64,000 nucleotides of DNA from the sequence record NC_028999.1, one strand, 5' to 3'. Under the pieces are notes generated by a model that was not told where the DNA came from, did not search any database, and worked only from the letters and a program-made list of their open reading frames with translations. A program made the translations under genes and the position numbers. Positions 49,303-59,126 of this stretch are shown piece after piece. How positions within the stretch are numbered: the stretch's first letter is position 1; each line of letters opens with the position of its first letter.

Positions 49303-49345
49303 GCTGTACCTGCGTCCACTCTTTCGACTGGTTTTACCCTACAGC
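49303..49345 (-). ncRNA. c-di-GMP-I (GEMM)-like half aptamer
   Basis: GCTGTA-GGGTAAAA-CCAGTC-GAAA-GAGTGG-ACGCAGG-TACAGC; second hairpin absent. Confidence 0.5.
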
Positions 49346-49452
49346 TAGGCTCATCAGTAATGAATTTTGCCAGCGCACATTTAGGAGGCGACAACTGTTA
49401 ATAGGTCGGGGGTGATAGCATTTGGGCCCAGTCTTTAACAGTGTCGCCAATT

Positions 49453-49541
49453 TGGCGGAAGCGCAGAGATTCGAACTCTAGGGGCCCTTTGGACCCGTCT
49501 GATTTCAAGTCAGGTGCCTTAAACCACTCGGCCACGCTTCC
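49453..49541 (-). tRNA. tRNA-Ser(TGA)
   Basis: GGAAGCG acceptor, CT-TGA-AA loop, long variable arm, TTCGAAT, encoded CCA. Confidence 0.95.
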
Positions 49542-49549
49542 ATTGTACA

Positions 49550-49641
49550 TTAGTCGTAACGATGTTTTAACCAGCGTAAACTACCGGCCCGAAGGTGGGC
49601 CGCCCGAGGGTGTTGAACCCCCGATTCTTCGTTACGACTAA
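49550..49641 (-). ncRNA. Circularly permuted, anticodon-less tRNA-like RNA
   Basis: 13-bp terminal stem enclosing a T-arm, a loop-closed acceptor-like stem and a D-arm, in that order. Confidence 0.75.
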
Positions 49642-49652
49642 ATTTCTGAATA

Positions 49653-49729
49653 TGGTGCCGTCAGAGGGATTCGAACCCGTCGACCTACTGATTACAAGTC
49701 AGTTGCTCTACCAGCTGAGCTATAACGGC
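49653..49729 (-). tRNA. tRNA-Thr(TGT)
   Basis: GCCGTTA acceptor, ACTGA-CT-TGT-AA-TCAGT, TTCGAAT, CCA; one extra nt in the T-stem. Confidence 0.93.
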
Positions 49730-49730
49730 A

Positions 49731-49821
49731 ATATGTGACTAGGTAGAACGAGTGCACTTTTCGCATCCAATCAACCCAAGTTAGGAAGATAGATACCACG
49801 CGCAATACCCTAGTCACATAT
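49731..49821 (-). ncRNA. Stem-closed leader RNA of the Thr/Ser tRNA operon
   Basis: 13-bp inverted repeat ATATGTGACTAGG/CCTAGTCACATAT between the promoter and tRNA-Thr. Confidence 0.55.
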
Positions 49822-49841
49822 GGTAATACACTGAGTATAGT
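49817..49841 (-). promoter_or_regulatory. Bipartite promoter
   Basis: ACTATACTC-N12-TATG. Confidence 0.7.
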
Positions 49842-49891
49842 TTTACTTACAATGACGCAATGGACCACAGTTCGTTATTCTGGCTAGATCC

Positions 49892-49923
49892 GGCATAAAG
49901 GGAACCCGAAGGCTCCCTTTATT
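49892..49923 (-). terminator. Terminator of the Kelch gene
   Basis: AAAGGGAGCC-TTCG-GGTTCCCTTT-ATGCC on the - strand. Confidence 0.85.
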
Positions 49924-49944
49924 CGCTGCTGGTATCTGACCACA

Positions 49945-57850: not shown

Positions 57851-57890
57851 GGGAGCCCTTCGGGGCTCCCTTCTATATCTTTTTTCTTTT
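57851..57890 (+). terminator. Intrinsic terminator
   Basis: GGGAGCCC-TTCG-GGGCTCCC followed by a T tract. Confidence 0.9.
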
Positions 57891-57900
57891 TGTCTGATAC

Positions 57901-57938
57901 GACATAAAGGAAGTAGCCACCGCTACTTCCTTTATTTA
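57901..57938 (-). terminator. Terminator after tRNA-Leu
   Basis: ATAAAGGAAGTAGC-GGTG-GCTACTTCCTTTAT-GTC. Confidence 0.85.
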
Positions 57939-57940
57939 AT

Positions 57941-58025
57941 TGGTACCCGAAGTGGGACTCGAACCCACACGTCACAAGGACAACTGATTTTAAGTCAGCA
58001 GCGGCTGCCTTTACGCCATTCGGGC
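57941..58025 (-). tRNA. tRNA-Leu(TAA)
   Basis: GCCCGAA acceptor, GCTGA-CT-TAA-AA-TCAGT, variable arm, GTGGG-TTCGAGT-CCCAC, ACCA. Confidence 0.95.
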
Positions 58026-58170
58026 ATATAGAGAACAGACGACAAGGCCATGTTGTAGCTTTCGCTAGTTATACGTATCTCATTCCCTAGGGAAGTGCCT
58101 AACGGCTTCTTTCGTACAACATTCATGGCTTTACAGACGTTGCTCAGCCCTCGTGAGCTGTTCTCTACAT
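58026..58170 (-). ncRNA. Stem-closed multi-branched RNA upstream of tRNA-Leu (~145 nt)
   Basis: 13-bp terminal stem with a G.U pair on the - strand; GCCATG/CATGGC; TAGC-GAAA-GCTA; GCC-GTTA-GGC; TTCCC-TA-GGGAA. Confidence 0.65.
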
Positions 58171-58193
58171 ATTAGATAACACTTGAGTATTAT
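58168..58193 (-). promoter_or_regulatory. Bipartite promoter
   Basis: ATAATACTC-N13-TATG. Confidence 0.65.
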
Positions 58194-58660
58194 CTTGGTC
58201 GCGGTCGATTCCCTGGACTCTGGCGATGAATCACCCGAGCAGGCATGTTAGGTACTTCGACAGCAGGCTTAAATAAGATCTTTGCAATCATGCGATCGAT
58301 TGCATCTTTCTGATCTTGAATAAACTCAAAGTGTTCTTCTGGTGGATCAGAGAACTTAGTGCGTGACTTACTTTGCCACTCTTCGTCTTTGGGATGGATA
58401 TATCCACCAATGACTCCGAATCGCAAGAAGTTGTCTGCTATGCCCAGACCTGGTTGACTTTCAAAACAGACCACTCGATCTGCACCACGTGAATGGCCGA
58501 TATAGAAGTCTGCTTGTGGTGGGCAAGTATCAGGCTTGCCCTTATCCATGATTACTTCTACACCTCGTTGGGTGAGGTAATCAACAATCGCAGCGTAGTA
58601 AGCCCGAGCTACATCGTTATTGATGAACAGGGGATTACCGGTGATTAGAACGGCCTTCAT
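58190..58660 (-). CDS. Minimal alpha/beta-hydrolase-like protein
   Basis: FYIGHSRGA nucleophile elbow (GxSxG). Confidence 0.65.
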   Translation of the reverse strand: MKAVLITGNPLFINNDVARAYYAAIVDYLTQRGVEVIMDKGKPDTCPPQADFYIGHSRGADRVVCFESQPGLGIADNFLRFGVIGGYIHPKDEEWQSKSRTKFSDPPEEHFEFIQDQKDAIDRMIAKILFKPAVEVPNMPARVIHRQSPGNRPRPR

Positions 58661-58690
58661 GGCGAAGCCTCCGAGTGAATCTCATAAGAT

Positions 58691-58912
58691 TCAGGCTTCG
58701 ATAGGCTCAACTACACGACGATGTTGTACAGTACCCCTGTCTGTAACTACCGTGATGGTGTTCTGGTTGTCAATAGCTACTACCTTCACCCCTTTAATAG
58801 TGGTGTGAATAGCTGCTGCCATCTCCGCTTTGGAGTAACGCCAATTGGCCATCAGGATTGCCGATACCTGGGTTTGAAGTTGTTTCAGTTCATTGATGTT
58901 TACAGACTGCAT
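58691..58912 (-). CDS. Hypothetical protein
   Basis: AAGGA RBS. Confidence 0.8.
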   Translation of the reverse strand: MQSVNINELKQLQTQVSAILMANWRYSKAEMAAAIHTTIKGVKVVAIDNQNTITVVTDRGTVQHRRVVEPIEA

Positions 58913-58965
58913 GGTTGTTTCCTTTTAGAGGGGATTTCATGAGATTAAACGTATCAGTAAAATAC

Positions 58966-59002
58966 AACATAAAGCCCCTCCCGAAGGAGGGGCTGTTATG
59001 CC
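58966..59002 (-). terminator. GGCATAA-hairpin-TTTATGTT element
   Basis: AGCCCCTCC-TTCG-GGAGGGGCT on the - strand. Confidence 0.85.
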
Positions 59003-59126
59003 AACCATCAACACAACAAGGAGAATCCCTCGACAGTGAGTCTTGCTCACTAGAAGCCACTTGGAAGGGTTAGTGGCTCCGGCGCGCCGAGTGTAGGAGA
59101 ACGAGGAGTAGGCATTCTTCTACATA
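58966..59126 (-). ncRNA. Candidate sRNA (~160 nt) with three CUCCU motifs
   Basis: Promoter at 59123-59147 and terminator at 58966-59002; hairpins AGCCACT/AGTGGCT and AGTGAG/CTCACT. Confidence 0.55.

Follow-up and report, generated by a model that had tools for sequence, protein, structure and literature searches.

Transfer RNA units of the nucleus-forming jumbo phage PhiPA3 carry a heterogeneous mixture of additional RNA segments with a probable primary role in cis

Small RNAs that are co-transcribed with phage transfer RNAs (tRNAs) are already known, including RNAC and RNAD of T4, sRNA2 of PAK_P3 and a leader-derived small RNA of 201phi2-1. The two T4 RNAs are located in the tRNA cluster and are processed from tRNA precursors. 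Related arrangements exist outside phages: the E. coli leuZ 3' external transcribed spacer (3'ETS) illustrates that a functional by-product can come from the RNA that separates the 3' end of a tRNA from the terminator, and in the tRNA-microRNA units of murine gammaherpesvirus 68 a tRNA-like moiety recruits host tRNA-processing enzymes and frees the attached small RNA. The function of RNAC and RNAD, the species 1 and 2 stable RNAs, is still unknown (PMC9697503). The sRNA2 (ncRNA2) of the Pseudomonas phage PAK_P3 (Nankokuvirus) is abundant late in infection, measures about 120 nucleotides (nt), lies between two tRNAs and lacks a separate start site (PMC4933390, PMC10914365), and the 201phi2-1 small RNA lies immediately upstream of a tRNA-Leu that is expressed from a middle promoter (PMC11512511). 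Here, the tRNA units of Pseudomonas phage PhiPA3 were compared with these systems. The analysed window of 64,000 nt is the right end of the PhiPA3 genome (NC_028999/HQ630627, 309,208 base pairs (bp); identity 100%), and window positions equal record positions minus 245,208. An initial annotation, made from the letters alone, had proposed that the PhiPA3 tRNA operons are cassettes from which host tRNA processing releases a panel of end-protected small RNAs, forming one effector or anti-defence arsenal. PhiPA3 is a phiKZ-like, nucleus-forming jumbo phage; the published literature holds no RNA-seq or transcriptome analysis of it (PMC11077065), and reads are deposited under GSE243675.

The tRNA region of PhiPA3 consists of eight short units with one promoter type and hairpin terminators, and the mixture of extra RNA within them probably has its primary role in cis. 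The shared promoter motif comprises an A-rich stretch, TACTCR, a gap of 11-12 nt and TATG or TATA. It was found at the heads of three tRNA units (49837, 54490 and 58189) and of three stand-alone units (59143, 56339 and, on the plus strand, 45877), as well as before two protein genes (55521 for gp366 and 57569 for gp371). A strict version of the motif occurs six times in the window, with five minus-strand copies within 49.8-59.2 kb, all intergenic, and one at 29804 (+). The tRNA promoters of phiKZ, 201phi2-1 and Pawinskivirus phages belong to the same motif class, and the promoter type of the eight units agrees with the middle class, which is transcribed by the non-virion RNA polymerase of the phage itself. 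All units close with a G+C-rich hairpin terminator and then TTTATG. This hexamer regularly follows terminator hairpins in window 45-60 kb, for example at 49885-49912 and 58970-58994; the unit end may serve as a TATG-type start for the next unit, as described for phiKZ-like phages. Three minus-strand tRNA units under one promoter class were thus borne out, and the stand-alone units placed by the initial annotation at 45.9, 56.1 and 59.0 kb proved real, each with a promoter, a non-coding stretch and a terminator. Within the tRNA units, tRNAs and non-tRNA structured segments are co-linear from promoter to terminator with no coding sequence between them, an arrangement shared with the tRNA-linked small RNAs of other phages. 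The extra RNA is heterogeneous, comprising stem-closed leaders, a tRNA-shaped element, a hairpin after tRNA-Ser and a conserved trailer after tRNA-Asn, of which some are conserved and some are orphans; no repeat family common to the spacers was found. The coordinates of all features are given in Table 1.

The leaders of units 1 and 3 had been described as stem-closed, and this was confirmed by their terminal closing helices of 12 and 13 bp, each of which was matched in none of 2000 dinucleotide shuffles. They had also been said to end within 1 nt of the tRNA, which holds for unit 3, where the helix abuts tRNA-Leu on the DNA, but not for unit 1, where the helix stops 2 nt short. The published 5' end of one phiKZ RNA of this promoter class is the base after TATG (PMC10914365); if PhiPA3 transcripts start likewise, the helices in the RNA would measure 9-11 bp, with 2-5 unpaired nt before the tRNA. 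A homologue of the unit 1 leader was identified in the phage HPP-Temi (L002:10999-11076), located upstream of tRNA-Leu(UAG) rather than tRNA-Thr. The two leaders share a 16-base identity, and their local alignment score was reached in none of 2000 shuffles. In the HPP-Temi leader the closing helix persists although all its letters have changed, and this helix stops one base short of the tRNA; in all three leaders the terminal complementarity takes in the AUG of TATG. This pair is the best evidence for a tRNA-linked module that is both portable and under selection. No further homologues were retrieved by blastn with either the unit 1 leader or its HPP-Temi counterpart, the shared 16-mer gave six chance matches in IMG/VR with no tRNA nearby, and no homologue of the unit 3 leader was found.

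Maturation of tRNAs in gamma-proteobacteria by RNase P, RNase E and exonucleases is an established pathway. Applied to PhiPA3, host RNase P would cut at each tRNA +1, RNase E would cut A/U-rich single strands after each encoded CCA, such as the 11 nt between tRNA-Thr and the stalk of the tRNA-shaped element, and exonucleases would trim back to stable helices. Units 1 and 3 would thereby each release a triphosphorylated hairpin leader, and unit 1 would in addition yield a tRNA-shaped RNA on its stalk. Synthesis of the precursors takes place in the phage nucleus, and their processing presumably occurs outside. The helix ends lie 0-5 nt from the tRNA +1, a geometry consistent with tRNA-processing cuts, and the precedents of PAK_P3 sRNA2, 201phi2-1 and T4 make release by host tRNA processing plausible in PhiPA3 as well. 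The stem-closed pieces should then persist as by-product small RNAs, as in those three phages, while their role in cis would be protection of the 5' end and ordered maturation of the precursor tRNAs. Two general observations place such a cis role above an arsenal acting in trans. First, transcripts from promoters of this class generally have their initial 3-12 nt paired, and the gp366 mRNA and the stand-alone RNAs are no exception. Second, the relatives mostly have leaders of 11-34 nt and spacers of 6-23 nt, indicating that the long PhiPA3 modules are add-ons rather than a requirement.

Examples of phage tRNAs and RNAs acting against defence are known from other systems, and the PhiPA3 units could likewise be production cassettes whose released, end-protected RNAs act in trans as effectors or as anti-defence decoys or sponges. 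Several of the pieces are indeed strongly folded and end-protected, the tRNA-shaped element could engage tRNA-binding proteins, and G-rich sites are conceivable pairing partners for the conserved C-rich loops of the Asn trailer and the 59.0 kb RNA. We nevertheless consider this quite improbable, as no piece matched a riboswitch, ribozyme, CRISPR-repeat or small RNA family, an anticodon loop is missing from the tRNA-shaped element, the 5' pairing recurs on an mRNA (gp366), most tRNA-linked pieces are limited to PhiPA3 or to PhiPA3 and HPP-Temi, and no target was identified. The idea of one coherent system, or of an effector or anti-defence arsenal, found no support: the elements are heterogeneous, the promoter class and its 5' pairing also occur on the ordinary gp366 mRNA, and no Rfam family other than tRNA matched. 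Several points weigh against a primary role in cis as well. RNase P might be obstructed, not assisted, by a helix that reaches position -1 or -2, and the internal loop conserved between the unit 1 leader and its HPP-Temi homologue, together with a near-identical 31-nt block in the Asn trailer, points to sequence-specific recognition, which protection alone leaves unexplained. Moreover, the release and stability of the PhiPA3 pieces are inferred by analogy. PhiPA3 is the sole member of its genus, and neither megablast nor IMG/VR nor the metagenome collection yielded a close relative, only proteins of 23-36% identity, so that the unit 3 leader, the tRNA-shaped element and the Ser hairpin were judged from the PhiPA3 sequence by itself.

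Unit 2 contains both a conserved segment and apparent leftovers of recombination. The trailer after tRNA-Asn is about 80% identical to its HPP-Temi counterpart; its first hairpin has a covarying stem and a kept loop, and the block that follows is identical at 30 of 31 positions. Its thermodynamic z is only -0.2, and its core was found in IMG/VR in PhiPA3 itself only. In HPP-Temi, the Asn trailer leads directly into the terminator that PhiPA3 has after tRNA-Tyr, which indicates that tRNA-Tyr and the adjoining stretch, which the initial annotation had called a mini-tRNA, are an insertion in PhiPA3. This 'mini-tRNA' shows no significant structure, and neither does the unit 2 leader that had been described as structured. 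Comparison of window 54015-54152 with L045:1501-1598 indicated that the arrival or exchange of tRNA-Tyr also brought along the initial bases of the tRNA that comes next in the donor; at the insertion junction there is a GAGAG microhomology with the terminator of the recipient. A 22-codon open reading frame preceded by GAGG is present in the unit 2 leader (54394-54462, minus strand); it is unconserved, given that the HPP-Temi leader at tRNA-Asn measures only 15 nt.

These features raise the alternative that most of the extra RNA is functionless evolutionary debris, namely scars left where tRNAs were gained, lost and recombined in a mosaic hot spot. The tRNA region is a minus-strand block that starts at the ribonucleotide reductase genes and extends through virion genes, a synteny common to phiKZ, 201phi2-1, HPP-Temi, PS119XW, BRkr and phiHQ with the tRNA genes dispersed among protein genes, while the set and order of the tRNAs vary across these phages. 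An HNH endonuclease gene lies among the HPP-Temi tRNA genes (L002:11410-11817; its annotated end overlaps the next tRNA), in keeping with a recombination hot spot. The donor bases carried by the tRNA-Tyr and 'mini-tRNA' insertion, a truncated 5' half of tRNA-Asn before an odd tRNA in phiKZ, and the unstructured unit 2 leader, 'mini-tRNA' and so-called GEMM-like stretch all agree with such an origin, and the latter three do look like unstructured recombination leftovers. As an account of most of the extra RNA, however, debris is unlikely. Against it stand the perfect terminal helices of 12-13 bp, which none of 2000 shuffles reproduced, and the HPP-Temi leader, whose helix is rewritten yet preserved around a conserved core. 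Divergent flanks enclose the near-identical 31-nt block of the Asn trailer, and the tRNA-shaped element retains the signature bases of the T loop and D loop; its 13-bp stalk would not be expected of a simple remnant of tandem duplication. A primary role in cis remains the preferred reading.

The segment between tRNA-Thr and tRNA-Ser had been interpreted as a permuted tRNA mimic. It consists of a 13-bp closing stalk, a variable stretch of 5-6 nt, a T arm with a TTCAACA loop, an acceptor-like stem of 6 bp capped by a hexaloop starting with ACC, the dinucleotide UA, a D arm with GG in its loop, and the return strand of the stalk. A descriptor of this body (T arm, capped acceptor stem, D arm and closing stem), scanned on the native rather than a circularly permuted sequence, gave a single match in 560 kb of PhiPA3 and related sequence, and the same strict descriptor gave no match in 20 shuffles of the window. 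The tRNA body and the permuted order were therefore upheld, together with a strong folding score, whereas an anticodon loop is missing; without it, the element cannot decoy anticodon nucleases. A permuted tRNA gene and a two-piece transfer-messenger RNA were rejected: the order is permuted, yet the 13-bp stalk replaces the anticodon loop, and ARAGORN reported no transfer-messenger RNA.

The order of the parts equals that of YrlA Y RNAs, in which the 5' strand is followed by a variable stretch, a T arm, an acceptor stem-loop, a D arm and the 3' strand (PMC4201824). The spacer could accordingly be a Y RNA of the YrlA kind that binds a Ro60-type protein or other tRNA-recognising enzymes, perhaps after an RNase P cut in the capped loop and CCA addition, as for M. 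smegmatis YrlA. Such RNAs are present in 22 phages (PMC4201824), ACC follows the 3' side of the acceptor-like stem, and a near-match to the YrlA motif GNCGAA(N0-1)G stands at the right place near the 5' end. The match is inexact, however, since the element reads AACGAAG with A for the first G, and the acceptor-like stem has 6 pairs plus a G-G mismatch. No TROVE/Ro60 domain was detected within 4 kb in a Pfam scan of 10 neighbouring proteins only, among jumbo phages, reports of TROVE proteins are limited to some members of groups 2 and 3 and do not extend to the phiKZ-like group 1 (PMC7824862), and the element has no Rfam match, although whether Rfam 15 includes a YrlA model was not checked. Membership in the YrlA family is thus the least likely of the accounts weighed here, and the element is described as shaped like a YrlA-type tRNA mimic, going by its predicted fold, without being filed as a YrlA member. 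It would also be very unlikely, in our estimate, that 49550-49641 is a functional Ro60-independent tRNA mimic that is freed, possibly cut or CCA-tailed at the capped loop by host maturation enzymes, and directed at a host tRNA-binding factor or a tRNA-directed defence, with the leader family shared with HPP-Temi as a second portable module.

Table 1 Positions of the tRNA units, their segments and the stand-alone units in the PhiPA3 window (z, thermodynamic folding z)
Feature	Position	Strand	Evidence
Unit 1 promoter (A-rich, TACTCA, 11 nt, TATG)	49817..49847	-	motif
Unit 1 leader, long irregular hairpin with 12-bp terminal closing helix	49730..49820	-	z = -5.4
tRNA-Thr (UGU)	49653..49729	-	ARAGORN, Rfam 65.7 bits; CCA encoded
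tRNA-shaped element, 13-bp closing stalk	49550..49641	-	92 nt; z = -4.9; unique descriptor match
tRNA-Ser (UGA)	49453..49541	-	ARAGORN, Rfam 53.2 bits; CCA encoded
Bulged hairpin after tRNA-Ser, C-rich apical region	49387..49448	-	z = -4.9
'GEMM-like' stretch, no defined structure or family	49298..49384	-	z = -0.8; no Rfam match
Unit 1 terminator hairpin, then TTTATG	49272..49297	-	
Unit 2 promoter	54470..54500	-	motif
Unit 2 leader, no significant structure	54343..54473	-	z = -0.9
tRNA-Asn (GUU)	54267..54342	-	ARAGORN, Rfam 68.3 bits
Conserved trailer after tRNA-Asn, 89 nt	54147..54235	-	~80% identity to HPP-Temi L002:6078-6166
'Mini-tRNA' stretch, left part of insertion relative to HPP-Temi	54112..54152	-	z = -0.8, weak structure
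tRNA-Tyr (GUA), class II, Pakpunavirus type	54026..54111	-	ARAGORN; Rfam tRNA score below threshold
Unit 2 terminator	53993..54019	-	same hairpin directly follows Asn trailer in HPP-Temi
Unit 3 promoter	58168..58199	-	motif
Unit 3 leader, multi-hairpin RNA with 13-bp terminal closing helix	58026..58171	-	z = -3.6
tRNA-Leu (UAA)	57941..58025	-	ARAGORN, Rfam 50.7 bits
Unit 3 terminator, then TTATG	57903..57931	-	
59.0 kb unit: promoter, ~157-nt structured RNA, terminator	58970..59143	-	z = -4.1
56.1 kb unit: promoter, ~268-nt RNA, terminator; upstream of gp367	56055..56339	-	
45.9 kb unit: promoter, ~380-nt non-coding stretch, terminator; upstream of gp355	45877..46280	+	z = -2.3

The remaining segments of unit 1 fared differently. 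The bulged hairpin after tRNA-Ser was confirmed by its folding score. The stretch behind it, previously likened to a GEMM element, gave no Rfam match even at E<=10 on a 194-nt stretch, so that a GEMM (cyclic di-GMP-I) riboswitch was rejected, as its weak folding score would also suggest. A hammerhead ribozyme, considered on account of CTGATGAG and CGAAAG at 49298-49384, was likewise dropped when no Rfam hammerhead model matched. Searches of the whole region and of narrow stretches against Rfam, at gathering and E<=10 thresholds, returned only tRNAs and chance matches, and other riboswitch and CRISPR-repeat readings were discarded because no family matched. The initial annotation was partly confirmed, its observations being largely right, with the exception of the GEMM-like element, the mini-tRNA and the unit 2 leader; its interpretation was supported in part.

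Five minus-strand tRNAs were found by ARAGORN, all with an encoded CCA, and four of them were confirmed by Rfam. They read mostly A/U-ending codons, as expected for a phage of 48% G+C in a G+C-rich host. RefSeq labels the genes at 49453-49541, 49653-49729 and 54026-54111 as Thr, Cys and Val pseudogene, respectively, whereas the ARAGORN anticodons correspond to Ser(UGA), Thr(UGU) and Tyr(GUA). The tRNA-Tyr, which had been considered odd, is 82.7% identical to a tRNA-Tyr in about 200 Pakpunavirus records. Relative to the tRNA-Tyr of EPA1, the anticodon stem covaries fully and pair 4:69 also covaries, which identifies it as a genuine, horizontally shared tRNA and no mimic. In phiKZ, a 'tRNA-Asn' of 87-89 nt (L004:7559-7700; phiKZ 269557-269700) has a class II shape with a long variable arm and a GUU anticodon, and is preceded by the truncated 5' half of an ordinary tRNA-Asn; BRkr and phiHQ are arranged likewise. 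Among the protein genes near the tRNA units, gp360 (49948-51804, minus strand) encodes a phiKZ gp298-like virion protein with Kelch repeats in its C-terminal half (E = 2e-60).

The stand-alone units are not linked to tRNAs in PhiPA3 and, by homology, appear to be new members of an RNA class described in phiKZ. The 59.0 kb RNA is homologous to intergenic RNAs of Pawinskivirus-like phages and phiKZ. In the alignment of two of its hairpins, 96.7% of the cells are paired, three pairs have changed on both sides, the loop CCCTTCCA is invariant, and the covariation score was 0.378 as compared with 0.158 in shuffles (1/500). A covariance model of this RNA (R1) scored 68-82 bits on Pawinskivirus-like phages and phiKZ (68.5 on the latter), no member was found in 201phi2-1 or 34 metagenome loci, and the loop pattern occurred in only one further IMG/VR contig. 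The phiKZ counterpart is the 141-nt TU237 RNA upstream of PHIKZ302, detected by northern blot (PMC10914365). For the 56.1 kb unit, alignments were obtained with intergenic regions of Pawinskivirus phages and with the phiKZ 298-297 spacer, which yields a Grad-seq RNA that was re-mapped to 270595-270485 and detected by northern blot (PMC8545117, PMC10914365). The annotated gene gp368 (56087-56308, plus strand) lies antisense inside this unit, and the relatives have no annotated gene there. Insertions and deletions of 1-2 nt in the most conserved block make coding unlikely on either strand, and gp368 is therefore probably spurious. The first 160 nt of the 45.9 kb unit are 77% identical in 8 related phage records, and the unit is recognisable by eye upstream of PHIKZ289.

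The novelty lies in the PhiPA3 instances, in a portable family of stem-closed leaders, and in a tRNA mimic of YrlA shape that is embedded in a tRNA unit and has no Ro60 gene within 4 kb. Should these leaders and the tRNA-shaped element prove to accumulate, the few phages known to obtain stable small RNAs from their tRNA units would be joined by a nucleus-forming jumbo phage, and the leader hairpin family and the YrlA-like mimic without a Ro60 partner would offer two portable RNA modules for study. The practical yield lies in the corrected tRNA labels, the flagged gp368, and PhiPA3 coordinates for homologues of the northern-shown phiKZ RNAs (59.0 and 56.1 kb).

Compared with known systems, the resemblance to the tRNA-microRNA units of murine gammaherpesvirus 68 is one of idea only; those units operate in a eukaryotic context of polymerase III and RNase Z. 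The layout of the E. coli leuZ 3'ETS is exactly that of the HPP-Temi Asn trailer, whereas in PhiPA3 tRNA-Tyr has been inserted before the terminator. As with T4 RNAC and RNAD, small non-tRNA RNAs, stable in the case of T4 and putative in PhiPA3, are encoded alongside phage tRNA genes; T4 relies on host RNA polymerase, whereas PhiPA3 has promoters of the phage polymerase type and three separate units. With YrlA, the PhiPA3 element shares a tRNA-like body (variable stretch, T arm, capped acceptor stem and D arm) on an end-paired stem (PMC4201824), but it lies between two tRNAs, whereas YrlA adjoins rsr; no Ro60 gene is nearby, the motif is inexact and an Rfam match is lacking. The published ends of PAK_P3 sRNA2 (PMC10914365), placed on the sequence, start at the first base of a 7-bp acceptor stem and run through a T arm to a 3' CCA, which indicates that this RNA is matured like a tRNA; it is a 120-nt tRNA-like RNA (L053:1508-1628; 86307-86427) that goes unrecognised by Rfam. 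Its tRNA polarity is normal and its acceptor ends are open, whereas the PhiPA3 element has a capped acceptor and an open stalk, and the two have no sequence similarity. The small RNA of the related chimallivirus 201phi2-1 is, like the putative PhiPA3 products, derived from a leader under a middle promoter (PMC11512511), with a 5'-terminal hairpin that begins at the start site. Its 92-nt leader, however, is not end-closed, having a 6-bp terminal run that was reached by 506 of 2000 shuffles, and its sequence shows no similarity to that of the unit 3 leader. The stand-alone units correspond to the early-termination RNAs of phiKZ: each of the three combines a phage promoter with an intrinsic terminator no more than a few hundred nt further on, both upstream of a gene. 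The HPP-Temi homologue of the 59.0 kb RNA directly precedes tRNA-Leu, whereas the PhiPA3 copy has no tRNA link, and the 59.0 and 56.1 kb units are homologues, in both sequence and position, of RNAs confirmed by northern blot (PMC10914365, PMC8545117).

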